A stretch of DNA of 64,000 bases from Ascoidea asiatica JCM 7603 (taxonomy: Eukaryota > Fungi > Ascomycota): contig BCKQ01000002.1 in the NCBI GenBank assembly GCA_001600695.1, forward strand, positions 1,261,184 to 1,325,183. Reading direction: 5' to 3'. The translations under genes were made by a program, and so were the position numbers. Position 1 is the first letter of the stretch, and each line of letters starts with the position of its first letter. The notes beneath the pieces are model-generated. The model ran no database searches and had not been told where the DNA came from. It worked only from the letters and a program-made list of their open reading frames with translations. This document shows, piece after piece, positions 47,596 through 62,669 of this stretch.

Positions 47596-49392
47596 ATGAT
47601 TCGAAATCAAGGTTTGTCTTCTTTTAATTTAATATCAAGAAGTTTGAGATCAAGTAAATTTAAATATCCTATTTATTTAAGTTACTCAGGTTATTCATCT
47701 TATTCAAGTATTTTAAATAATTCAAATAAATTATTCAAAAACAATAGAAATAATAAAGATATTAAAGATAATTTACAAAAGAGAAAAATTTCAAGAATTA
47801 ATTATGAAGCATATAATAATTTACATAATCCACCAAAGAAAAATTGGAGTAAAATTTTCATATATACAATTTTAACTATTTCAATATCTGGATATATTGG
47901 ATATTATTTTTATTGGCCAAGAAATAAATATCCTAAGAAAATTGCAGATTTATTAAGAAAAGGATTATGGGCCGAAAGTAATAAAGAAAATTTTAATTAT
48001 TCTAAAGCATTAAAATATTATATTGAAGCACTTAATGAATTACATTTAAATAAAGAAATTTATAATATTGAATTATATTCAGATGAATATACTGGAATTC
48101 AATTAAAAATTGGAGAAATGTATGAATTATTAAATTTAAATGAATTTGCAATAAATATTTATGAAGAAATTTTAAATTTATATTTAATTAAATTAATTAA
48201 TTATGAAATTGAGAATAAAGAAAGACCTCATATAATTCAAAAAGATTTAAGAGTTTTAATTAAATTAATTTCATTATTAAGAGATATTGATCCAAATTAT
48301 TGTCAAACATTAATTTTAACACATTGTGGACAAGCACAATTAGAAGTTGTTAAAAGAGGTGGAGAATTAATTACTAATTTTAAAGATTCAAAACTTGAAA
48401 TTTTAGGTTTCAATACAAAAAATGAATTAAATTCTAATAAAAAATCAGATATAAATAATTTAAGTGATGAATTGGAAAATGAAATTGAAAATGAAAATAA
48501 AATTGAAAATGAGATTGAAAATGAATTAAATAAAATTCCATTGAATAGAGAAGCATGGGAACCATTTAGGGATGAATTTTTTATTTTAAGAGATTTATTT
48601 GTTTCAATATCAATATTAAAAGGAGATTATTCAATTGGATTATCAGTTCAATTAAAAACTATACCATGGATGACAATGGCAGAATTTTTACCAAATGAAG
48701 TTATGATTGCAAATTGTAATTTAGCATCATTATTATTTTTTCAAGCACAAGTTTATCATTCAACAATTTTAACAAATGATTTAAAAAAGAAATTTAATAA
48801 AGAATTGAAATTAAGATTAAAAGAGAATAATGATAATAAAGAAGAAGTAGAAGGAGAATTAAAAGAAAATGAAAATGAAAATGAAAATGAAAATGAAAAA
48901 GAAAAAGAAAAGGAAAGAGTGATAATTGATGATAAAGAGATTTCAAATATAAAATTATATGAAAAAAGAATGATAAAATCATCAAAAGATATATTTCAAA
49001 CGAATATAAATTTTATAAATAAATATTTTTTAAGAAATTCAAAAAATTTAAAAAATTTAAATTTTTTAAATTTTAAACAAAATAAAAATTATAATGAAAT
49101 TTTAGGATTAAGTTTTTATTCATTAGGTGTTATAAATTTACATGAAGGTAATTATCTTGAATCTAAAATTTTATTTAAAGAAAGTATTAAAAGGGGTAAA
49201 ATTTTAAATAATAATGAATTAATTGAAGAAAGTGAGAATGAATTAAAAAAATTGGAGATTGAATTGAATGAAAAAAGAAAAAATGTTAAAAATGGTGATG
49301 ATAATAAATTAATAAATAAAGAAGTTGAGGAACTTAGTGATGATGAATCTAAGATTATGACAATTGATATGATTATTGGAACAATGGACTAG
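47596..49392 (+). CDS. MGR3: Mitochondrial i-AAA protease adaptor subunit Mgr3
   Basis: Presequence-like N-terminus, one TM helix, then YPKKIADLLRKGLWAES...ALKYYIEAL...SDEYTGIQLKIGEMYE and TPR-like helices. Confidence 0.82.
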   Translation: MIRNQGLSSFNLISRSLRSSKFKYPIYLSYSGYSSYSSILNNSNKLFKNNRNNKDIKDNLQKRKISRINYEAYNNLHNPPKKNWSKIFIYTILTISISGYIGYYFYWPRNKYPKKIADLLRKGLWAESNKENFNYSKALKYYIEALNELHLNKEIYNIELYSDEYTGIQLKIGEMYELLNLNEFAINIYEEILNLYLIKLINYEIENKERPHIIQKDLRVLIKLISLLRDIDPNYCQTLILTHCGQAQLEVVKRGGELITNFKDSKLEILGFNTKNELNSNKKSDINNLSDELENEIENENKIENEIENELNKIPLNREAWEPFRDEFFILRDLFVSISILKGDYSIGLSVQLKTIPWMTMAEFLPNEVMIANCNLASLLFFQAQVYHSTILTNDLKKKFNKELKLRLKENNDNKEEVEGELKENENENENENEKEKEKERVIIDDKEISNIKLYEKRMIKSSKDIFQTNINFINKYFLRNSKNLKNLNFLNFKQNKNYNEILGLSFYSLGVINLHEGNYLESKILFKESIKRGKILNNNELIEESENELKKLEIELNEKRKNVKNGDDNKLINKEVEELSDDESKIMTIDMIIGTMD

Positions 49393-49586
49393 TTAGTTAG
49401 TAATTGACTAAGTGACTAGATAAGTAAATAAGCAAATAAGCAAATAAGTAAATAAGTTAATATCTCAGTAAATAGTTGAATAACAAGTATTATAATATAA
49501 ATATACAATATAAATAAAGCTTTTATAACTATTAAAAGCTATTGAAATACATTTATACTGTATATAAATACCAATATAAAAGAAGC

Positions 49587-49592
49587 AAAAAA
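49587..49592 (-). terminator. Pol III terminator (T6) of tRNA-Trp
   Basis: TTTTTT on the minus strand 4 nt after the discriminator base. Confidence 0.8.
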
Positions 49593-49596
49593 GAAT

Positions 49597-49686
49597 TGAA
49601 ACTGACAGGAATTGAACCTGCAGCCCTTCGATTGCAACTCAATCACAGAACTGGAGTCGAAAGCTCTACCATTGAGCCACAGCTTC
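49597..49686 (-). tRNA. tRNA-Trp(CCA) with an 18-nt intron (49633-49650)
   Basis: Minus strand reads GAAGCTGTGGCTCAATGGTAGAGCTTTCGACTCCAG[intron]ATCGAAGGGCTGCAGGTTCAATTCCTGTCAGTTTCA. Cloverleaf, A/B boxes and CCA anticodon (49652-49654) present; near-identical to yeast tRNA-Trp. Confidence 0.97.
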
Positions 49687-50475
49687 ATCTCTTGGAATAA
49701 ACACAGATTTTTCTGCACATAGCTCAAATTAACGCATGTGACTTTGATTTTTATTCCGACCTTACCGAGGGTTCTTTTCAACCAGTCCCACACCAGTGGT
49801 CTCGACGCGTGATTCTTTTTGTGTTTTTGTGTTTTTGTTTGTTGTTGTTTTTGTTTGTTGTTGTTATCTTTTCGATCTTCCTTTGCATCTTCTTCTGTTT
49901 CTTGTGTTTCTTCTGCTGTCTGTGCTTTCTTCTTGACTATCTTTATAACCATCTTCATCTTTATCATCTTCTTTCCACTTCCAATTTCTGAGTGTTCTAC
50001 GACTGTTAAACTTCTTAAAGGCTGAAAATCTCAATTTCCACTGGCTGAATTACTTCTTTGGTTTCTTTTTTTCTCGGTCTTTTGCTTCCTATCGACTTAA
50101 AATTCCAATAATTTCAACTTTAAAATATCGATAATTTTTCAAATTTTAACTTTATTTCTTTCAAAATCTCATTTATCCCACCAATAGCTATTCAATTATC
50201 CATTTAAATAATTCTATTAATGACAATGAAAAAAAGCTTGATTGATTTTTTATAAAGTTAATCAAATTTTTCCAATAGCCGAATTATAAACAATAATAAT
50301 AATAATAATTATAATAATAATAATAATAAAATTTATTCGAAATGGGTATTCCAATTTTATGATTCATTTATGATTCATTTAAATTCAAAATTATTTCATA
50401 TATATAAAATGTTTTATTACTTGTATTTATATCAATCTTTATATTCATATCTATATTGCTTTTCATATTCACATC

Positions 50476-50543: not shown

Positions 50544-52049
50544 ATGACTTCTTCATTACATGATGATATCTCAATTTCAATAAGTTCTGCAATTTGGACT
50601 TCTGTTAAACCAATAATAAAAATTTATTTAATTATAATTTTTGGTTTTTTATTAACAAAAAAAAATATTTTAACAATTTCAACTTGTAAAAATTTATCAA
50701 ATTTAATATTATTTATCTTAATGCCATCTTTAATATTTAATAAAATTGTAACAAATTTATCATATACTGATATTATTTCAATATTATTATTATCTTTAAT
50801 TTCATTATTAATTTTCTCATTTGGTGGTTTAATTTCATTTATTATTATAATTTTAAGTAAAATTAATAAAAATAAATTTATTTATATTCCTGAAAATTTT
50901 AAATCTGGTTTTTTAATTGCTGGTATTTATCCAAATATTGGTGAATTACCAATTGCTTTTTTACAAACTTTACAACAAAGTGGTAATACTTTTACTTCAA
51001 ATCAAATTGATAAAGGTCTTGCTTATATTTGTATATTTATTGCTGTTGAAATGTTTACAACTTTTAATTTAGGTCTTTCTAAATTAATTCAATATGATTT
51101 TAAAGAATCAATAACAAATAATAATAATGATAATAAAAATTTAAATGATATTGAAAGAATTCAAAGTATTATTTCAACTCCAAAAGAAATAAATACAAAC
51201 ATTGATAATATAACTGATAAAAAAAATGATGATATAAGAGCAAATTCAATAGAAAATTCAATTCAAAATTTATCTTCTGATTCAATGTTATCTTTAAATT
51301 CAATAAAAAATAATAATAATAACAATAATATCAATAAAAAGAAATCAAAATTAAATATAATATTTTGGAAAATTTTAAAACCTTTGATTTTTATTATTAA
51401 AAATTTTAAAAATCCAGTTTCTTTATCAATTGTAATTTCAATAACAATTGCTTTAATTCCATGGTTAAAATCTTTATTTGTTTCAACTACTTTTAAATTC
51501 ATTAATATTCCAAATGCTCCTGATAATCAACCTCCATTAAATTTTATAATGGATTTAACTGCATATTTAGCTAATGCTCAAGTTCCATTAGGTTTATTAT
51601 TATTAGGTTCAACTTTATCAAGATTAAAAATTTCAAATAATAATAATGATAATAATGAATCTGAAGATAATAATGATAAACAAAATATTTCAAATCATAG
51701 TAATAATCATTTTATACTTTCTTCAATTTTATTAACAATTGGTAGATTAATAATTTCTCCAATTATTGGAATTATTATAATTAATCAATTTAAAAGAATA
51801 AATTGGTTTAAAGATGATATAAGTATTTTAGTAAGTATAATTGGTTGGGGTTTACCAACTTATACAACTCAATTATATTTAACTGCCTCTTATTCAACTC
51901 ATAAACCAAGTAATGATCCAAATCATAAACCAACTCAAAATATACAATTAGATTCCTTAGGTATTTTATTCCTTTTACAATATCCTGTATTAATTATAAC
52001 TTTACCAACACTTGTAACTTATGCTTTAAAGGTTAACTTAGGTTATTAA
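50544..52049 (+). CDS. Auxin-efflux-carrier (Mem_trans/PILS-like) membrane transporter, ECM3/YNL095C-like
   Basis: AIWTSVKPIIKIY, MPSLIFNKIV, YPNIGELPIAFLQ, PWLKSLFV..IPNAPDNQPPLNFIMD, VPLGLLLLGSTLSRL; about 10 TM segments around a central loop. Confidence 0.9.
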   Translation: MTSSLHDDISISISSAIWTSVKPIIKIYLIIIFGFLLTKKNILTISTCKNLSNLILFILMPSLIFNKIVTNLSYTDIISILLLSLISLLIFSFGGLISFIIIILSKINKNKFIYIPENFKSGFLIAGIYPNIGELPIAFLQTLQQSGNTFTSNQIDKGLAYICIFIAVEMFTTFNLGLSKLIQYDFKESITNNNNDNKNLNDIERIQSIISTPKEINTNIDNITDKKNDDIRANSIENSIQNLSSDSMLSLNSIKNNNNNNNINKKKSKLNIIFWKILKPLIFIIKNFKNPVSLSIVISITIALIPWLKSLFVSTTFKFINIPNAPDNQPPLNFIMDLTAYLANAQVPLGLLLLGSTLSRLKISNNNNDNNESEDNNDKQNISNHSNNHFILSSILLTIGRLIISPIIGIIIINQFKRINWFKDDISILVSIIGWGLPTYTTQLYLTASYSTHKPSNDPNHKPTQNIQLDSLGILFLLQYPVLIITLPTLVTYALKVNLGY

Positions 52050-52467
52050 TAAAACTTATTAAACTCCAATTTTGTTTTTTTTATTTCCTGCTTTTAAAAA
52101 TAATTTTTTTTTTTTTTTCTAACAAATTTTTTTTAACCAAAATATAATAATATACATAATTAATTACTCATAATAGCATTTTTTAACATTTTTAAAAAAA
52201 AAAGAAGAATTTAAAAAGAAAATAGAAAAAAACTTTCTATTTTTATATAATATAGTAGAAAATATAATTGAAAGAAAAGGAAAAAAAAAAAAGAAGATAA
52301 AGATAATGTTATGTAAAGATTTTCAAAGAAAATAAAATGGAAACAATGAGAAATAAAAATGTTAAAGAAATTATAAAATAATATAATAGAATAATATAAT
52401 GATAATAATAAAGGAATTTAATTATAATATAATATAGGTTTAAAAATTCAAATGAAATTAAATAATA

Positions 52468-52839
52468 TCAATAACCATGAGTATAAACATCACCAGTTGT
52501 ATGAAACACATCATTACTTGCTTCTTCAACATCATCATGAGCAAATGCACAAATAAAAAGATAATATCTTGTTCTAACACAAATTAAATGTGGACATCTC
52601 ATAATATATTGATCTTCAAAAGAAATTGGTTTAATAATTTCATTTTTATATAAAAAACCTGTTTGCATTGCAACTGCTGGATAATCAAGTGCTGTAATAA
52701 TATTTCTTGCATCAATAATTGATAAATGTAATCCATTTCTTTGAGTCACAAATTTAACATTACGTAATAAAAAAATTGAAACACTATCAACATATCCATA
52801 ACTAACTATTTCATCAGCTCTTTCTTCAATATTAAGCAT
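52468..52839 (-). CDS. Divergent profilin-like protein A (123 aa)
   Basis: Colinear with yeast Pfy1: DEIVSYGYVDSVSIF~DNLIGTGKVDKAVIY; NGLHLS...ITALDYPA...TGF~GGLSLQ...VQGFDNPA...NGL; LICVRTRYYLFI~VVCVRTKQTVII; ends in Tyr; profilin length. Confidence 0.75.
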   Translation of the reverse strand: MLNIEERADEIVSYGYVDSVSIFLLRNVKFVTQRNGLHLSIIDARNIITALDYPAVAMQTGFLYKNEIIKPISFEDQYIMRCPHLICVRTRYYLFICAFAHDDVEEASNDVFHTTGDVYTHGY

Positions 52840-54512
52840 TTTTTATAAAAGACTAAGATTATTTAAATTTATTATTGTTGATTAAAGAGCAGCAGCAATA
52901 GCAATACTTTTTTTTAATGATTGATGAAGATTAGAATATTGAAAATATAGATAATATACTTTTGGTTATACTTTTTTTTTTTTACTATTTTATTTTACTT
53001 ATGAAAGTGGATAAATGTGAATATTTATATATATAATTTTTTATTTTCTGTTTTTCTATTTTTATTTTATGTTATTGCATACTTAAGAAACTATTTCAAA
53101 GTTGTAATATAAACAAACCTTTAAAAGAGATAAGAGGAAAAAAAACTTTTTTGCTAATTAAATTGAGGTTTTATTTCACAATAGATAAGTTTTAATAATA
53201 AGTTTTAATGATAAGTTCTAATGATAAGAAACTAAATTTTAATGATATTCTTTGTTCTTTTTGATAAACTCTTAATTTTTTTCTAAGTTTTTTAAAAAAA
53301 TTTGATAATTATGAGATAATTATGAGATAATTGAATATTATTATTTGGATAATTAAGGCAAAGAAGTAAATAAAATGAATACAAATTGTTGATTGTTAAG
53401 ATTGTTTCGAATAAAATATACTTTATAATTTACTTTATAATTAGATATTAAATTATAATAATGAAATGCAAAAAAACAAGAAAAAAGTATTTAAATTTGT
53501 CTCAATTTTGTAACAATGCAGAGTACAAATAATTATATTTATTCTTCAATTGAATGTCGTAGTTTAAAACTGATTGAAAACATGTTTTTTTTTTTATAAA
53601 AATAAATGATAATTTGGTGATTGGTGATATAAATTATTTAACTTATTTTAGTTACAATCAAAAAATAAAATCAAGAGGCAAATCAAAAAAGGATTTAAAA
53701 ATAATTTATTTTGGAATTGAGTTAACATGAATCATTAATTCCAGATTTCCATTGATGAATGATTCAAATTTTAATATAGACTCTAATAATTGCAGTGAAG
53801 ATCCTAAATAATAAAATGAAATGAAATTGTTGAGTTAGTTTAAAATACATTTAATTCCATAATTTCTAATTCAATTCATAATTCAATTCATAATTCAATT
53901 TATACTTCAATTCATATTTGAATTAAAAATGGAGATAAAAATTGAAATAAAAATAGTGGTAAAAGTGAAATGAGGTCTTTGAAAGTGATAAAAAGCTCAA
54001 TTTATAGAAAATTTGAAAATATTGTTTTAAAAAAAGGGTTAAATTTTAGAAAAAGATAGCCAAAAAAGAGATTGAAATGATGACATTTTCTGAAATGATT
54101 GGCAAGAAAACATTTTGAATAAAAAATAATTGAAATTGAAATGAAGTTGTAAATTAATCAATTCGTTATTAGTTACTGAAGTTGACTTTAAAATGGTTAT
54201 AAATTTGATAAAGTTTTGAAATTATGATAATTTAAGTAAGTAATTTATTATTTAACTTAAATAAATAAGTAAAAGATATTTAAAATATGTATCAGAGAAA
54301 GAAAATGAATTAAAAAAAGGATTATATAAGAGTATATTATAAAATGTTATAAATTAAATGTAAAAATGACTAAGAAATTATTAAAATTATGATTAAAAAA
54401 ATGAATAAAAAAAAGGTGAGAATTAAAAAGACTATAGTACTTTGAATAATTGAATGATTTAATAATTTAATGATTTAAATAAAGGAGTAAAAGATATAAA
54501 AAATTGAATAAT

Positions 54513-54944
54513 CTAGTGGTTGTTATTATTATTATTTTGATTATTGATTTGATTTTGAAGTTTTAATTCATCAGAAACTATTTGTTCTTGATCAAGAACT
54601 ATATCAATAACTTGTAAAAAAGAATCCATGATTGGATTTGTAAGATAAGCATTAAAAGTAACAACAAAAATTGCAAATTTAGTTTTACTTATACCAAGAC
54701 CATTATTACAAATTAAAACATCATTATTATCATCTTTTTGAATTGTTGAATAATATCTATCTTGAATTTTAAATTCATATGGAACTTCAGCATTAAAACC
54801 TCTTTCAATATTTAAAAAATCTACATAAGATAAAAGAATTCTATTTTTTTGAATTATTAATTCATAATCATTTAATGAATGAATTGCAACTTGATATAAA
54901 TTTGGAATTTGTAAAATTCTATTTGCAAAATCTTCATATGACAT
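54513..54944 (-). CDS. Divergent profilin-like protein B (143 aa, Q/N-rich tail)
   Basis: MSYEDFANRIL~MSWQAYTDNLI; VAIHSL~AVIYSR; IERGFN~IVQGFD; FKIQDRYY~LHIQGQKF; GLGISKTKFAIFV~GVVCVRTKQTVII. Confidence 0.65.
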   Translation of the reverse strand: MSYEDFANRILQIPNLYQVAIHSLNDYELIIQKNRILLSYVDFLNIERGFNAEVPYEFKIQDRYYSTIQKDDNNDVLICNNGLGISKTKFAIFVVTFNAYLTNPIMDSFLQVIDIVLDQEQIVSDELKLQNQINNQNNNNNNH

Positions 54945-56470
54945 TTTGGAATTATAATATAATAAGTTTTAATAAGGGGAAAAAAATGAAATAGAAGAAA
55001 AAAAAAAAAAGGATTAAGTTTCAAAGAAAATACAAAAAAAAAAGATATTTAAATGAATTTTATTAAATTTAATTGAATTTCATTGAAATTTATTGACTTG
55101 AAAAGAATTAAAGAGAATTGTAAGAAATTGAGAGGAATTGAGAATAATTGAGAAGAATTGAAGAACTGAAGGACTGAGAAAAAATTGAGAAGAAAAATAG
55201 ATATAATATTATTTAATTTTACATAGAGTATGAATAAACTAATTTCTTTGATTATTATTTAAATTATTTGAATCAAAGGATTATTTAATTATTAATTAAT
55301 ACTTTCATAATTATATTTTATATTTTTGATAATTTACGTGTTTTAATAGTTAGATTATAGTAGACTCCTTATGATAAGATTGATAATAATTGATAATGGA
55401 TAAATATATTTCAATTTCAAATTCAATTTTAATTTTAATTTAGATATCAATAATAAATGAGAACAAAAAAAAAAAAACCTTGAGAAAAGATACTCTTTCA
55501 ATTTAATGAAATCAAAGTCAATTTCTTCAAATAAATTAATAGAAAAATTACAAATTTAGTATTCACTATTAAAAAAAGAATAAATTATGAATTAAAAATC
55601 TAATATTATGTTATGTTACATTAAGTATTAAATCCAGAATCAAAAAATGAATTGAAGTAAGATAAATAAATGTCTTTTATTTTATTATTTATTTTATTTT
55701 TTAATATTATTTATTATTATTTATTATTATTTATATGTGAAATTTACCAATTAACTATTTGAAATTTGTAATAATTTTTTGTCTGGAACTCCACCAAAGA
55801 ACTGTTTGCCTTACCTACTTTATATCATCAATTTCATCATCAAAATGCCTTTCATCAAAAGATTTTACTTCTCATTTAATTCTAAATTTGATTTTGATTC
55901 TGATTCTGATTTCAATCTTCTAATTCATCTTTTGATTCTGGGGTGAAATGGTCGTTATTGTGAAATATTCACTTTGCTATTTGGTATTCGATACTGAAAA
56001 TGCTTCTGCGGCTATCTCCGAAAACGCGAAAACGCATCACAAAAACGCAAAAACACGAAAAACACGAAAAAAAAAAAGATAAAAAATATTTTTGCAGCTC
56101 AAATTCAAAAATTAATTGGCGCATAAAATAAATCCGCTGGTATTCTTATAGCACGGAACACCCAGTTTAAGTTTATGAAGGTTCCTTGCCGGTTCCGTTT
56201 CTGGATATAAAAATCATTCCAATTTCCTATTTTGGTATTTACGGCCGAAACGCTCGGAAGTGTTTTTAGCCGACCTACAGTTACTTCAATAAGATATAAA
56301 TATGAGGCTGGTGCTTCCTCACAAATATCACAAGAAGCAGAAGAAGCAGAAGAAGCTAGTTCTGTTAATGTTACTTTTGCTCGAAAATTTTTCTTTAAAT
56401 AATCATTTAGTTTTATATTTGTATGTATTCTTTATTCATTCATTTACTTAATTATCTATATATTTTTTTA

Positions 56471-58174
56471 TTAAAAATTTTCAGTACCTAAAATTTCTGC
56501 AATTAATTTACCACAAGCAACAACTTCTTCATCTTCATATCTTCTACCAGATAATTGAAAAGATATTGGAGATCCTTCAAAATCTTCTATATTATCATAT
56601 AAACTATATTCAAGTTCTTCTAATTTATTTCTTGGTTTATAATTTAAATCTAAAATATCAATTTTTGGATCTTGATAAATACCACTTGGAAAAACTAATG
56701 TTGGAAAATCTAAAATATTAAATAATGATGTATATCCCCAATAAAAAATTTTATTTGGTTTTGGTACTGAATTACAATATGTTGGTGATAAAATAAAATC
56801 AATATTATTATCATTTAAAAATTGTGTATATTCTGTTCTTAATGAATTTCTAATACCATTTAATTCTCTATTTTCTTTAACTGATAATGCTTTATCTCCA
56901 TTACCAAATGATAATGCCCATTTAGTTAAATCTAATAATTCTTCTCCACTTTCTTCTAAAAATTTTTTTTGCATATAATTACCATCACATGAATACATTT
57001 TATGTACAGTTTCATAAGCTTCTAAAATTCTTGGAGGTTTAAATTCAATAATTTCAATATTTGAATTTTTAAATTTTTTAATAATTTCTTTTAAAGCTCT
57101 TTCAACTGGTGGTAATGGTTTAACAATACCATCATCATAAATTACACAAATTTTTAAATTTTTTGAAATTGGTTTTTCAATATTTCTCCATTCTATTGGT
57201 AATGTTAAACAATCTAATTTCCATGGTTTTAAATTTATATATGATTTCATAAATAATTCAATATCATAAATTGATTTTGTAATTGGTCCATAAACTCCAA
57301 CAACAGATTCTTGTCCTGCTCCACTACTTAATCCACCAGATGTTGAAATTCTATAACTTGTTGGACGTAAACCATAAATTCCATTAAAAGCTGCTGGAGT
57401 TCTTATACTACCACCAATATCTGAACCTAAACCCATTACTGAAGCTCCTGAACTTACACATGCACCTTCACCACCTGATGAACCACCTGGTGATAATCTT
57501 GAATTATGAGAATTTCTAGTTCTACCAATAATATTATTAACTGTATCTAAATGCATAATAGTTTGCGGTTGAGAAGTTCTAAGTATAAAATTTGCACCAT
57601 TTTGTTTTGATAATTTTGTTGTAATACTATCATCATTTGGTATATTAAATAGTTTAGATACATAACCTGCATGAGTTATATGATTTTTATAATTATAATG
57701 TTCTTTAACAGACATTGGTAAACCATGTAATGGACCAATTAATTTTTTATTATTTTTAATAAAATAATTATCTAAAAATTTTGCATTTTCTAAAGCATCA
57801 TCAATTAAAAATTCACAAGTAAAATTTAATAAATAATTTGATAATATTGATCTTTTTAAAAATGCTTTTGTTAATTCTAATGAAGTTAATTCACCAGTTG
57901 AAATTAATTTAATTAATTTATAAGCTGGTAATGAAGTTAATTTTTTTTCAAAATCTGTTAAAATATTTGAATTTTCAATAAATTTAATTGAATTAAAATT
58001 TGAATTATTTAATTCATTAATACTTGGTAATTGAGTTAAATCAATATCAAATCTTTTCATATCATTTTGAATTTTTAAATTATATTCATCAATTTTTGGT
58101 TTATAAATTTTATTAAATTTTTCTGAATTTGGTTTATAATCAAATTTATAAAATTCTTCTGGTTTTACAGTCAT
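56471..58174 (-). CDS. Amidase-signature family amidase (acetamidase/Amd2-like)
   Basis: GPLHGLPMSVKE (Lys), PGGSSGGEG (cis-Ser), GLGSDIGGSIRTPA (nucleophile Ser). Confidence 0.95.
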   Translation of the reverse strand: MTVKPEEFYKFDYKPNSEKFNKIYKPKIDEYNLKIQNDMKRFDIDLTQLPSINELNNSNFNSIKFIENSNILTDFEKKLTSLPAYKLIKLISTGELTSLELTKAFLKRSILSNYLLNFTCEFLIDDALENAKFLDNYFIKNNKKLIGPLHGLPMSVKEHYNYKNHITHAGYVSKLFNIPNDDSITTKLSKQNGANFILRTSQPQTIMHLDTVNNIIGRTRNSHNSRLSPGGSSGGEGACVSSGASVMGLGSDIGGSIRTPAAFNGIYGLRPTSYRISTSGGLSSGAGQESVVGVYGPITKSIYDIELFMKSYINLKPWKLDCLTLPIEWRNIEKPISKNLKICVIYDDGIVKPLPPVERALKEIIKKFKNSNIEIIEFKPPRILEAYETVHKMYSCDGNYMQKKFLEESGEELLDLTKWALSFGNGDKALSVKENRELNGIRNSLRTEYTQFLNDNNIDFILSPTYCNSVPKPNKIFYWGYTSLFNILDFPTLVFPSGIYQDPKIDILDLNYKPRNKLEELEYSLYDNIEDFEGSPISFQLSGRRYEDEEVVACGKLIAEILGTENF

Positions 58175-58932
58175 CTTGAATTAAATTGAATTAAAAATGA
58201 ATTGAATTATTGAATTATTGAATTATTGAATTATTGAAATGAATTGGAAATGAAATTGAAATTGAGTAGAAATTGAAGTTGAAATCGATTCATTCTATTG
58301 AAAGAACCAAAAGAAAAGGGAGAATTGAACTCCATTTATATAATATTTTTTCTTTCTTTTTCTTGTTTGTAATAACATTTAGCTTCTAAAACACAATAAA
58401 TCTGGATATATTACTAAATATTGATAAAGATATGAATTGGAATTGATTAAAAAGCATTGAAAGAGCTTATCTTCCGCGCAGTGAACAAGCTCTCAGACAC
58501 AATCGAATTCTCGAGGACTGGGGAGATGGCCTAATTGGGAAAATACGGCGCATTGGGAAAGAAGTAGCCAGAGTGTGGCGAGGGAAACAAGAATAAGCGT
58601 GGCGGTGTCTGTGACAAAACATCAAAACAAGCTCCAGCCGCGTTAAAAGCAGTAATTGCCCCATTTGGACTTAGCCGCGATTGACCCACAAAAGAAAGAA
58701 AAACAAGAGCTGTGTAATAATGCATGTACACAAGCAGAAATGTTTTAAAGTTTGTCACGGTTATTTATCCGTGTCTGGGCATTTCCGTGTTTTGCTTTTT
58801 TTCCGAAATTTCTATACCCTCGGATGAGTACTCTTGAGATAACCCTTAAACCTTATATCTCACCGGTAATAACCTTAAAATTATTTCTCTTTTTAGAATG
58901 CAAAATATTTATTATGTATTAGTATTTTATTA

Positions 58933-60480
58933 TTATAATTTAGATGGATTTAAATCCATATTAAGATGAACAGATTTTGTACGAGTATAAGCTTCAAAAC
59001 CAATATCACCTAATTCATTACCAATTCCACTCATTTTAAATCCAGAGAATGGAACTCTAATATCTTCATCATTACTTGAATTTAAATAAATTGAACCTGC
59101 ATCTAAATTACTTGAAAGATAATGAGCAACTTTAATATTACTTGTAAAAACCATGGCAGCTAAACCATAAATTGAATCATTTGCATAATCTAAAACTTCT
59201 TCTAAAGTTTCAAATTTTATAATTCCAACAACTGGACCAAAAATTTCTTCTTTAATTATTCTCATATCTGGTTTACAATCAATAAAAATTGTTGGATCAA
59301 CATAATAACCTTTTTTATTTTCAATATCATTAATTCTTGATTTTTTACCACCAAGAATTAATTTACCACCTTCTTTAATACCAATATCAATATAATTTAA
59401 AACTTTTTCTTTTTGTATTTTACTTATTAATGGACCAACTTTTGAATTTTCATTAAATGGATCTAAAACTTGATAATTTTCAATAATAAATTTTTTAAAA
59501 TTTATAATAAATTTATCATAAATTTTACTTTGTACAAAAATTCTACTATTTTGGGTACAATTTTGTCCAGAATTATAAATAAATCCAAAACTTGACCATT
59601 TTATAGCTTCATTTAAATCACAATCATTAAATACAATCAATGGAGATTTTCCACCACATTCTAAAGTTATTGCTTTTAAATTTTCAGAAGCTAATTTTGA
59701 AATAATTTTACCAACTTTTGTACTACCAGTAAATGCAATTTTATCAATACCTTTATGTTTTGCAATTAATGAACCTGCAATATTACCAATTCCAGAAATT
59801 ATATTAAAAACACCAGGTGGGAAACCTGCTTTGTGAACTAAAGTCGCAAAATATAATAAAGATAATGGTGTAGATTCTGCACTTTTAATAATTATACAAT
59901 TACCAGAAGCTAAAGCAGGACAAAATTTCCATGAAGCCATTGATAAAGGATAATTAAATGGACAAATTGAACCAACTATACCATAAGGTTCTTGTAAAGT
60001 ATAAGCTAATTTTTTTTCATTTAAAATCATTGTTTTACCTCTAATTTTTTCACACATTCCAGAACTATATCTTAATAATTCAATAACTGCAATAATATCA
60101 GATTTTGAATTAAATTCTTTTGGTTTACCAGAATCTATAGATTCTATTGAACTTAAAATTTCTAAATTTTCTTCAGTTAAATCAGCTAATTTATTAAAAA
60201 TTTTACTTTTTTCATAATTTGAAAAATTTTTCCAAGTTTTTTTAAATGCAAATCTTGCACTTTTTACAGCATAATTTATATCATCTTCTTCAGCAGTATA
60301 AAATTTAGTTATAACTTCTTCAGTTGCAGGATTTATTGTTTCAAAAGTTGAACCTGAAGAAGAGTTTTGCCATTTACCATTAATATATAAACCTATTGGT
60401 TGTTTATAAATTTCTCCAGTTGGTAATTTAATATCAACGAATAATTCATTATCTATTTCAGTTTCTGATTGGTTTTCCAT
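58933..60480 (-). CDS. Cytosolic NAD(P)+ aldehyde dehydrogenase, ALD2/ALD3-like
   Basis: CPFNYP, FTGSTKVG, TLECGGKSP, YNSGQNCT (catalytic Cys in the Ald2/3-type context), EEIFGPV; no presequence. Confidence 0.93.
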   Translation of the reverse strand: MENQSETEIDNELFVDIKLPTGEIYKQPIGLYINGKWQNSSSGSTFETINPATEEVITKFYTAEEDDINYAVKSARFAFKKTWKNFSNYEKSKIFNKLADLTEENLEILSSIESIDSGKPKEFNSKSDIIAVIELLRYSSGMCEKIRGKTMILNEKKLAYTLQEPYGIVGSICPFNYPLSMASWKFCPALASGNCIIIKSAESTPLSLLYFATLVHKAGFPPGVFNIISGIGNIAGSLIAKHKGIDKIAFTGSTKVGKIISKLASENLKAITLECGGKSPLIVFNDCDLNEAIKWSSFGFIYNSGQNCTQNSRIFVQSKIYDKFIINFKKFIIENYQVLDPFNENSKVGPLISKIQKEKVLNYIDIGIKEGGKLILGGKKSRINDIENKKGYYVDPTIFIDCKPDMRIIKEEIFGPVVGIIKFETLEEVLDYANDSIYGLAAMVFTSNIKVAHYLSSNLDAGSIYLNSSNDEDIRVPFSGFKMSGIGNELGDIGFEAYTRTKSVHLNMDLNPSKL

Positions 60481-62222: not shown

Positions 62223-62669
62223 ATGATTGAAACTTCAATGATTTATGAGGATAATAATATATTCAATCCAGCAATTATTAAAGTATTTGATTCTAATTTT
62301 ATATTTCAAGATAAAAATGAATTATTTAAATGGATTTTAGATCAATTTACAAGTATAAATTATTTAGTTATAATAATTGAAAATAATAGTAATAGTAATG
62401 AAAATTTAAAGAAAAAACAAATAATAATAAATTCAAATTATAAATTTCATGCAAAATTATCAATATTAATTAAAAAAAAAAAATATAGTTTAAATTTAGA
62501 TAAATCAATTAAAAAATTTACTGCTTATGCTTATAATATTAAAACTCCACTTTTAATAAATTTTAATGGTTTAAAATCAAATGAAATTAAAAATTATTAT
62601 AATTTTAATAAATATAGTAAAATTTTTAAACAAAATGATAAAAATTATATTGTTACTTTTAATTCATAA
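62223..62669 (+). CDS. Hypothetical 148-aa protein with a degenerate AFT/FAR1-like (WRKY-GCM1 fold) segment
   Basis: AAAATG start context. FQDKNELFKWILDQF...LVIIIE resembles Aft FEDKS.IKPWLQKIF...IVIERS; YKFHAKLSILIKKKKYSL resembles CPFRVRATYSLKRKRWSI. Confidence 0.5.
   Translation: MIETSMIYEDNNIFNPAIIKVFDSNFIFQDKNELFKWILDQFTSINYLVIIIENNSNSNENLKKKQIIINSNYKFHAKLSILIKKKKYSLNLDKSIKKFTAYAYNIKTPLLINFNGLKSNEIKNYYNFNKYSKIFKQNDKNYIVTFNS

Follow-up and report, generated by a model that had tools for sequence, protein, structure and literature searches.

Profilins have a seven-strand antiparallel beta-sheet, with the N- and C-terminal helices packed against one face and a short helix against the opposite face. 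To our knowledge, the budding yeasts examined to date have one profilin gene, which is highly conserved and essential or nearly so; the mean column identity of 27 aligned yeast profilins is 80%. The much more diverged proteins of Asgard archaea, Leishmania and the poxviruses (A42R) are the main profilins of their lineages. In yeast profilin, W2, Y5, W29, Y119 and Y125 make up the poly-proline clamp (PMC2175289; mature numbering), and single or double alanine changes at K66, R71, R80 and H81 lead to conditional or lethal phenotypes (Wolven et al. 2000, PMC2175289). Mammalian PFN4 bound some phosphoinositides in vitro, but not actin or poly-L-proline (PMC2694148).

Two intact reading frames

Two small genes, A and B, lie in the same orientation in the window, by which we mean the whole 64,000-nucleotide stretch of DNA that was analysed. 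The preliminary description had reported them as co-oriented open reading frames 1.7 kb apart, and both were found again, with a gap of 1,673 bp. The features of the region are as follows.

52468..52839, (-) strand: profilin-like gene A, an ORF call; 123 aa, intronless, no Trp, pI 5.2
52840..54512, (-) strand: AT-rich spacer of 1.67 kb, presumed promoter of A, from the sequence
54513..54944, (-) strand: profilin-like gene B, an ORF call; 143 aa, intronless, no Trp, pI 4.5, Q/N tail at the C-terminus
54945..56470, (-) strand: upstream region of B, 1.5 kb, from the sequence, motif counts and short tandem repeats

Both frames are intact and start at the first ATG of the open frame, in an A-rich context. 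In frame, codon scores come to 0.51 bits per codon for A and 0.52 for B, compared with 0.32-0.81 for 19 reference genes, while the off-frame scores are strongly negative; GC content is 4% at third codon positions and 39-44% at first positions. The chance of a frame this long at any one start is about 1.7e-5 for A and 2.9e-6 for B, although in a 20-Mb genome ORF length by itself is not decisive. Because their codon usage matches that of the window's other genes, the coding status of A and B can be regarded as settled. Two further copies, C and D (see below), have the same native codon periodicity (GC3 of 4-12% versus GC1 of 33-44% for A-D), and all four frames are full-length, with no stops or frameshifts, though pairwise identity is only about 20% and approximately 9-11% of random codons in such a composition are stops. 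None of the four contains a CTG codon, so that their reading is independent of CUG reassignment.

The DNA of A and B is identical over 2.8 kb between the contigs of two studies, which probably sequenced the same strain. When sequencing runs were searched with the A/B stretch, two further species from one and the same study matched in low-complexity bits only, and no RNA run contained the stretch. The two genes are set in a 4.4-kb stretch that has few genes and many repeats.

The spacer (52840..54512) contains no ORF that reaches 50 aa, and an Rfam scan between A and B gave no match. Four GATAAG sites are clustered within 100 bp of it (53129-53228), against one per 1.9 kb window-wide; a 13-bp tandem repeat at 53180-53228 creates some of these sites. 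The sequence TATATATAAATA also occurs in the spacer, about 190 bp 5' of A's ATG. Upstream of B, three copies of CRCGAAA (SCB-like) and one of ACGCG are found at about 56018-56072, approximately 1.1 kb 5' of the ATG, and judging by their motifs these are candidate sites that may be regulatory. The upstream regions of A-D have no 8-mer in common that includes two or more G/C.

Likeness to profilin, singly and as a family

The likeness of A and B to profilin is weak when each is taken alone. In Pfam, which the preliminary description had proposed as a check, A matches PF00235 below the curated cut-off of 25 bits (15.5 bits, E=0.019, profile positions 10-116 of 127), and B has no match in a scan up to E 10. 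Aligned by hhalign to 27 yeast profilins, A has E=3.2e-5 and B E=4.9e-3, and both alignments run collinear with profilin for about 100 columns, beginning at residue 1. The likeness exceeds chance: an HMM built from 94 yeast profilins gave A 10.6 bits, a score reached by 0 of 2000 shuffles, and B 7.2 bits, reached by 3 of 2000; among 119 open frames of at least 70 aa in 84 kb, A-D were the four best matches to the yeast-profilin HMM. Profilins are also the nearest ESM neighbours of A (0.92) and B (0.91), with a profilin-4 cluster among the closest to A.

Several other searches came back essentially blank. Phmmer of A or B singly against the PDB gave chance matches only, a profile of A and B together had no PDB match, and word-based homologue searches with either gene returned nothing. 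With A as the query, phmmer yielded 0 matches at E <=0.001 among 1.84 billion representatives, and an exact look-up of A-D in the protein collection found none of them present. The proteome of this organism evidently lies outside the protein sets searched, and these empty results consequently say little about sister species.

The "tandem pair" of the preliminary description proved to be part of a larger set, since contig 2 carries at least four diverged copies. C (144 aa, at 764 kb) and D (139 aa, at 775 kb) lie about 0.5 Mb away from A and B on the same contig. C scores 25.4 bits against PF00235 (E=1.6e-5), just above the 25-bit cut-off, and D scores 16.5 bits (E=0.0095), under it. A profile built from A-D had three matches among 177,635 PDB sequences, and all three are profilins (S. 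cerevisiae 1YPR/1K0K, E=9.4e-5; S. pombe, E=0.0078; a mite profilin, E=0.35). When C was left out of the profile (A+B+D), 1K0K was still the top match (E=0.0011). The hhalign comparison of A-D to the yeast profilin alignment gave a probability of 95.7% (E=1e-8), and without C the values were 96.7% and E=3.4e-10. Leave-one-out family HMMs recognise every member, with 0 of 1000 shuffles reaching the observed score; for example, A scores 26.7 bits, where the best shuffle has 11.1, and B 16.8 bits, where the best shuffle has 8.9. The family profile, hhalign and the leave-one-out HMMs thus back the homology to profilins that had been proposed for A and B. As judged from these sequence comparisons, it is weak for either gene alone and firm for their family.

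Degenerate DNA patterns were used to search the genome. The pattern back-translated from the hairpin motif (described below) recovered 5 of 5 known genes, and one for beta1, derived from the four diverged copies, found these four again. The 13 and 55 further sites returned by the hairpin and beta1 patterns, respectively, do not belong to the family, and one of them, a 132-aa ORF, is an FKBP. Genome searches with the proteins, the Pfam family and the alignments returned the input copies only, this search step being insensitive. A maximum likelihood tree that places A-D among 28 yeast profilins is saturated, its terminal branches being 5.5-10 substitutions per site long. Its pairings of A with C and of B with D are untrustworthy, and pairwise scores disagree with them. 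So far the A-D family has been seen in the present genome alone, and keyword searching of the literature turned up no account of yeasts with diverged profilin paralogues.

A search for a separate canonical PFY1, also suggested in the preliminary description, found one on contig 4 (G000:C4:349824-350189, (-) strand), with 150 bits against PF00235; nothing in the protein collection was above 79% identity to it. This PFY1 has a 5' intron (GTAAGT...TACTAAC) after MSWQ, that is, after codon 4, whereas the diverged copies are intronless, a difference that may be a sign of cDNA-mediated origin or of intron loss. The single intron-containing gene presumably retains the essential profilin role.

Binding-site residues and fold

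The poly-proline clamp positions W2, Y5, W29 and Y119 correspond in A to I, R, V and a gap; Y125 is kept, as the last residue of a C-terminal ...HGY. In B the five positions hold Y, F, I, D and N, and its C-terminus is a Q/N tail (QNQINNQNNNNNNH) with no terminal Tyr. Column mapping bore out the residues given earlier for both genes, namely I, R and V at the W3, Y6 and W30 columns of A together with its terminal Tyr, and in B Y3/F6, the missing Trp (its W30 column holds I), the loss of the terminal Tyr and the Q/N tail. None of A-D contains Trp, and both clamp Trp are replaced in all four. The Y5 column is still aromatic in B and D, and Y119 is gapped or replaced in all four copies, in a C-terminal part of the alignment that is insecure.

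The residues that contact actin have also changed. The columns of K66, R71, R80 and H81 hold I, S, gap and gap in A; Y, Q, L and I in B; I, Q, A and Y in C; and H, I, T and L in D. R80 and H81 fall in an indel-bearing loop that is poorly aligned. The uncoupling from poly-proline proposed for A and B is therefore in keeping with their sequences, from which the clamp residues are gone along with the four actin-contact residues, and A and B would be expected to have lost actin binding as well. Actin binding is preserved, however, in very diverged profilins such as those of parasites and Asgard archaea, and lost contact residues are no proof of lost binding.

Yeast profilins have 58 columns with conservation of at least 90%, and the copies keep 9-13 of these. 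The N-terminal helix, the beta1 strand V[SA]I[YFH] and helix 2 are kept in A-D, and a basic beta6-beta7 hairpin, [RK][ST][KR]xx[ILV][LF][IV], is common to A-D and PFY1.

Structure modelling, another proposed check, gave a profilin-like result for B and an unusable one for A. The AF2 model of B, computed with an alignment as input, has a pLDDT of 83, a pTM of 0.71 and the topology H-E-E-H-E-E-E-E-E-H. Its top Foldseek matches in the PDB are profilins (TM 0.65-0.76), as are the top Atlas matches, but the input alignment held profilins, which makes this model partly circular. Single-sequence AF2 failed for A (pLDDT 33), leaving its fold without an independent model; the secondary-structure elements of that model coincide in position with those of profilin, a match that is given no weight here. 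A would nonetheless be expected to retain the profilin fold.

Origin, role and comparison with known profilins

We consider it probable that A and B are functional native genes that arose from PFY1 and now lie near the limit of recognition, in a family of at least four copies beside the canonical gene. Homology, intact frames, native codon usage and residue replacement are each observed in A-D. If the two genes were instead functionless relics of old PFY1 duplications, decaying or never expressed and with frames left open by luck, the want of RNA support for A/B, the want of homologues in public protein sets and the gene-poor, repeat-rich 4.4-kb setting would be easily understood, and a 20-Mb genome of 20% GC would be expected to contain frames as long as these by chance. 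We regard this as improbable: 4 of 4 copies have full-length frames at about 20% identity and native codon periodicity, and their hydrophobic pattern is still read as profilin by profile methods. Frames still open at such distance disfavour neutral decay, which would have closed them. Far less probable again is a convergent or spurious likeness that hides another small alpha/beta family, such as Roadblock/LC7 or longin/LAMTOR. Roadblock and Gtr-type domains do appear lower in the structure rankings (Foldseek E of about 0.02, Atlas TM 0.54-0.64), and A and B are singly sub-significant in Pfam, but family-profile sequence searches lead to profilins and to nothing else that is significant, the Roadblock (PF03259) and longin families are absent from Pfam scans up to E 10, the collinearity with profilin runs from residue 1 through about 100 columns, and C is above the Pfam profilin cut-off.

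A and B might also be specialised working profilins that hold actin monomers through a rewired interface without docking on poly-proline, serving as formin-independent buffers or as competitors of Pfy1. The conserved fold core and basic hairpin of A-D and PFY1, the pI of the copies (4.5-5.6, near the 5.5 of PFY1) and the presence of actin-complexed Asgard and Leishmania profilins among the B-model matches, at 15-18% identity, all fit this proposal. We think it unlikely, if slightly less so than decay, since K66, R71, R80 and H81, where alanine changes are harmful in yeast (PMC2175289), are replaced or deleted in 4 of 4 copies, and just 9-13 of the 58 highly conserved columns remain.

If A and B are functional genes descended from PFY1, A-D would fold like profilin yet be unable to engage poly-proline tracts, those of formin included, and would probably have no canonical G-actin binding. 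Like mammalian PFN4, they would work through another surface, which might contact lipids or a new protein partner. By analogy, a PFN4-like, poly-proline-independent role appears the most likely one for the copies, and the new function that the preliminary description ascribed to A and B ("neofunctionalised") is only a possibility. The full proposal, of a lineage-made, multi-copy profilin-fold family that is free of poly-proline and actin and has taken on a new role parallel to PFN4, perhaps under condition-specific promoters (a GATA array for A, an SCB/MCB-like array for B), is offered tentatively and is rather doubtful in its entirety.

Pfy1 of S. cerevisiae (PDB 1YPR/1K0K; PF00235) is the best and nearly the sole PDB match of the family profile. 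The copies are similar to it in length (123-144 aa, versus 126 for Pfy1), align collinearly, have the same predicted topology in the case of B, and have VDK/AAIY-like beta1 and VCVRTK-like beta6-beta7 motifs in common with it. They differ in being only about 15-22% identical to Pfy1, with W2, W29, Y119, K66, R71, R80 and H81 replaced. A kept PFY1 beside at least four copies at about 20% identity shows how much drift the profilin fold tolerates once it is freed from its ligands. If expressed, the copies are natural experiments on which residues serve fold and which serve function, and on other ligands of the profilin scaffold. There is also a lesson for methods: a single-sequence search of 1.8 billion proteins was blank, whereas a four-member profile from within one genome identified the family.

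The Asgard archaeal, Leishmania and poxvirus A42R profilins, which are among the structure matches of the B model, have the profilin fold at 11-20% identity. The matched Asgard and Leishmania structures are profilin-actin complexes. Here, moreover, a normal profilin is also present, and the copies form a within-genome family. Because the clamp and actin-contact residues are lost, PFN4 is a fair analogy, as the preliminary description had held (PMC2694148). Mammalian PFN4, which is testis-specific, is likewise a profilin-fold paralogue that exists beside canonical profilins and has lost both sites. It differs in being an old, conserved animal gene with a known expression and knockout phenotype, whereas the yeast copies are multi-copy, much more diverged from one another and have no known orthologues. 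Nothing points to common descent with PFN4, and any likeness would be one of parallel evolution. A-D offer a microbial parallel, open to experiment, for animal PFN4, which is poorly understood.

Two intact genes in a gene-poor stretch

The window lies at positions 1261184-1325183 of contig 2 in a genome of 20.3 Mb and 71 contigs, and its composition (about 16-37% GC per 500 bp) is that of very AT-rich eukaryotic DNA. The two co-oriented profilin-like reading frames of the preliminary description, A and B, are present about 1.7 kb apart (1,673 bp). The start codon of each is the first ATG in its frame and lies in A-rich sequence, and the two are the only ORFs of at least 50 aa that stand out in a 4.4-kb gene-poor stretch between a transporter gene and an amidase gene.

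Features at the A/B locus (window coordinates)
49596-49687, tRNA-Trp, 92 nt, the sole RNA gene near A and B
50544-52049, plus strand, Mem_trans/auxin-efflux-family transporter gene, bordering the gene-poor stretch
52468-52839, minus strand, A, ORF of 123 aa
54513-54944, minus strand, B, ORF of 143 aa
56471-58174, minus strand, amidase gene (PF01425), bordering the gene-poor stretch

With base composition as it is locally, the probability that a random codon is a stop is about 0.09-0.11, and the chance per start of an open frame is about 1.7 × 10-5 for the 123 codons of A and 2.9 × 10-6 for the 143 codons of B, values that are low locally but not decisive over 20 Mb. Better evidence that A and B are genes comes from codon usage. 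Against a codon table derived from 19 of the window's long ORFs, A scores 0.51 and B 0.52 bits per codon in the coding frame (reference genes, 0.32-0.81), and the remaining five frames of each score strongly negative. GC content is 4% at third and 39-44% at first codon positions, with periodicity as in the reference genes. Neither carries a CTG codon, so their reading is independent of yeast CUG reassignments. The 2.8-kb A/B stretch shows zero differences between contigs from two separate studies. These contigs probably derive from the same strain and may be the source of the assembly, so the agreement speaks for a sound assembly and nothing more. Genes A and B are both intact and native.

The surroundings (50544-60480) have a low gene density, and the genes flanking the pair also include an aldehyde dehydrogenase (PF00171). 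The tRNA-Trp probably contains an intron, judging by its length, and Rfam gave no match between A and B. No Pfam family was assigned at E ≤ 0.001 to the frames at 47596-49392 (plus strand, 598 aa), 62223-62669 (plus, 148 aa) and 49539-49967 (minus, 142 aa); the last, probably a spurious frame, lies across the tRNA-Trp on the strand of that gene. Intergenic DNA in 52050-56480 is dense in short tandem repeats (period 5-37 bp, 56 TRF rows per 4.4 kb) and strongly strand-asymmetric, with plus-strand GC skew up to +0.64.

Upstream of A, 290-390 bp from the ATG, a 100-bp segment (53129-53228) contains four GATAAG sites, all antisense to A and partly created by a 13-bp tandem repeat; across the entire window GATAAG is no commoner than expected (33 sites against 35). 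The cluster could be a candidate nitrogen-regulated upstream activating sequence for a GATA factor, a theme with which the adjoining amidase and transporter would agree. Upstream of B, at a distance of about 1.1 kb and just past the 3' end of the amidase gene, three SCB-like CRCGAAA sites and one ACGCG form an array of 8-9-bp periodicity (56018-56072). The array sits within an island of comparatively high GC content (55964-56384, about 32%) that has no Rfam match and is overlapped by a plus-strand 56-aa ORF (56232-56402).

A profilin-like family beside one canonical PFY1

Taken singly, the profilin signals of A and B are weak but consistent. The Pfam profilin family, PF00235, matches A over profile positions 10-116 of 127 at E = 0.019 and 15.5 bits, below its cut-off of 25 bits, and gives no match to B. 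Aligned with 27 yeast profilins by hhalign, A scores E = 3.2 × 10-5 and B E = 4.9 × 10-3, both collinear from the N-terminus. An HMM of 94 yeast profilins gives A 10.6 bits (equalled by 0 of 2000 shuffles) and B 7.2 bits (3 of 2000). The nearest ESM Atlas clusters are profilins (A 0.92, 201 shared features; B 0.91, 189), a family that accounts for 26 of the 30 nearest clusters in each case. Pairwise z-scores are 5.9-6.9 for A against the species' own Pfy1, 2.1 (global) and 5.6 (local) for B against Pfy1, and 3.9-5.5 for A against B.

The preliminary description had taken A and B for a tandem pair. Both copies are real, but they are not merely a pair, and two sister genes elsewhere on the contig extend the family to at least four.

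Sister copies on contig 2
C2:764037-764468 (L006:4034-4468), minus strand, C, 144 aa, PF00235 25.4 bits, E = 1.6 × 10-5
C2:774776-775192 (L007:4773-5192), minus strand, D, 139 aa, PF00235 16.5 bits, E = 0.0095

C thus reaches the Pfam cut-off. C and D lie about 0.49 Mb upstream of A/B, separated from each other by 10.3 kb that includes other genes, and are intronless, Trp-free, diverged profilin-like genes. C, like A and B, sits in a gene-poor stretch, here of 6 kb.

A profile built from A-D only, with no canonical profilin included, was searched against 177,635 distinct PDB sequences. Its three matches at E ≤ 10 are all profilins: S. cerevisiae 1YPR/1K0K (E = 9.4 × 10-5), S. pombe 3D9Y (E = 0.0078) and a mite profilin (E = 0.35). 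This order, budding yeast before fission yeast before animal, fits descent from a fungal profilin and not a foreign source. Against the yeast profilin alignment, hhalign gives the profile 95.7% probability (E = 1 × 10-8). With C, the sole member to pass Pfam alone, left out, yeast profilin is still the top PDB match (E = 0.0011) and hhalign gives 96.7% (E = 3.4 × 10-10). An HMM of the other three copies gives 26.7 bits for A, 16.8 for B, 19.9 for C and 31.4 for D, values equalled by 0 of 1000 shuffles (shuffle maxima 8.9-14.9); recognition by these models places A and B in the family. To check specificity, a canonical yeast-profilin HMM was applied to 119 open frames (frames of at least 70 aa in the window and the two 10-kb loci of C and D): A-D take the first four ranks, and the next frame scores 3.7 bits. 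At the level of sequence profiles, A and B are homologous to profilin.

The canonical PFY1 whose presence was to be checked is the single strong PF00235 match in the genome (C4:349824-350189, minus strand, 150 bits). Its translation is a typical budding-yeast Pfy1, 74-79% identical to Saccharomycotina profilins, and after MSWQ it carries the early intron usual for this gene, ATGTCTTGGCAAG/GTAAGT...TACTAAC. The organism is thus a budding yeast with a normal PFY1, to which A and B are additional; both lack its intron.

A DNA pattern back-translated from the beta6-beta7 hairpin has 18 sites in the genome, and those in long frames are A-D and PFY1 only; degenerate DNA pattern searches of the genome gave no further family member. 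A 132-aa frame on contig 8 (C8:396507-396905, L036:514-912, plus strand) is FKBP-type prolyl isomerase-like by its motifs and unrelated to profilins. Homologue searches with A and B were blank and the exact A-D sequences absent, in protein collections that apparently lack this organism's proteins (its own Pfy1 has no match there above 79% identity), and such blanks give no proof of a species-restricted family. By these searches A and B belong to a family of at least four, so far found only in this genome, beside one PFY1.

Predicted fold and replaced ligand residues

Yeast profilins have 58 columns of at least 90% conservation, and of these 9-10 are retained in A, 11-12 in B and 13 in either of C and D. 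A-D and PFY1 share V/A-S/A-I-Y/F/H in beta1, followed eleven residues on by Q or E, and the beta6-beta7 hairpin [RK][ST][KR]xx[ILV][LF][IV]. Mutations have been made in yeast profilin at its predicted poly-proline-binding (W2, W29, Y119, Y125) and actin-binding (K66, R71, R80, H81) residues; W29A was lethal, several changes gave conditional or lethal growth, and H81A alone looked wild-type (Wolven et al., PMC2175289).

Residues aligned with Pfy1 (mature numbering)
W2: A I, B Y, C E, D gap
W29: A V, B I, C S, D V
K66: A I, B Y, C I, D H
R71: A S, B Q, C Q, D I
R80: A gap, B L, C A, D T (indel loop, less certain)
H81: A gap, B I, C Y, D L (indel loop, less certain)

As aligned, the known poly-proline- and actin-binding residues of A-D are replaced. 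The W2 and W29 columns read as the preliminary description had them, as did the terminal Tyr, present in A and absent from B. None of the four contains Trp, and all are acidic (pI 4.5-5.6; Pfy1, 5.5).

From its single sequence, AF2 gave no usable model of A (pLDDT 33). B, modelled from an alignment with A, the species' Pfy1 and 27 yeast profilins, reached pLDDT 83 and pTM 0.71, with helix, two strands, helix, five strands and helix in the order of profilin and a long C-terminal helix entering the Q/N tail. Foldseek of this model against PDB places profilins at the top (TM 0.65-0.76, rmsd 2.5-3.0 Å), including 1YPR, actin-complexed Asgard profilins and poxvirus A42R, with Roadblock and Gtr domains much lower; an ESM Atlas shape search concurs. 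Since the input contained profilins, the model indicates compatibility with the fold and is no independent proof of it.

Origin and possible function

That the PFY1 intron is missing from all copies would fit a single cDNA-mediated copying event with later DNA duplications; loss of the intron would explain the intronless copies equally well. The A-D phylogeny is saturated and uninformative. We infer that the four genes are maintained by selection, because all four frames have stayed open and compatible with the fold although the copies share only about 20% identity, a state that neutral decay in so stop-rich a composition would have prevented.

A-D probably no longer serve as profilins in formin-driven assembly, and probably use a different surface, in the manner of PFN4. 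Retained actin binding by way of an altered interface is unlikely, though actin binding does persist in very diverged profilins of other lineages. If expressed, A-D would be a clean system for study of a case argued here from sequence. A parallel is mammalian profilin-4, PFN4, which bound some phosphoinositides and neither actin nor poly-proline (PMC2694148). A-D, too, appear to be diverged profilin paralogues without the ligand sites; they differ in that they would have arisen independently, in a fungus, and number several copies.
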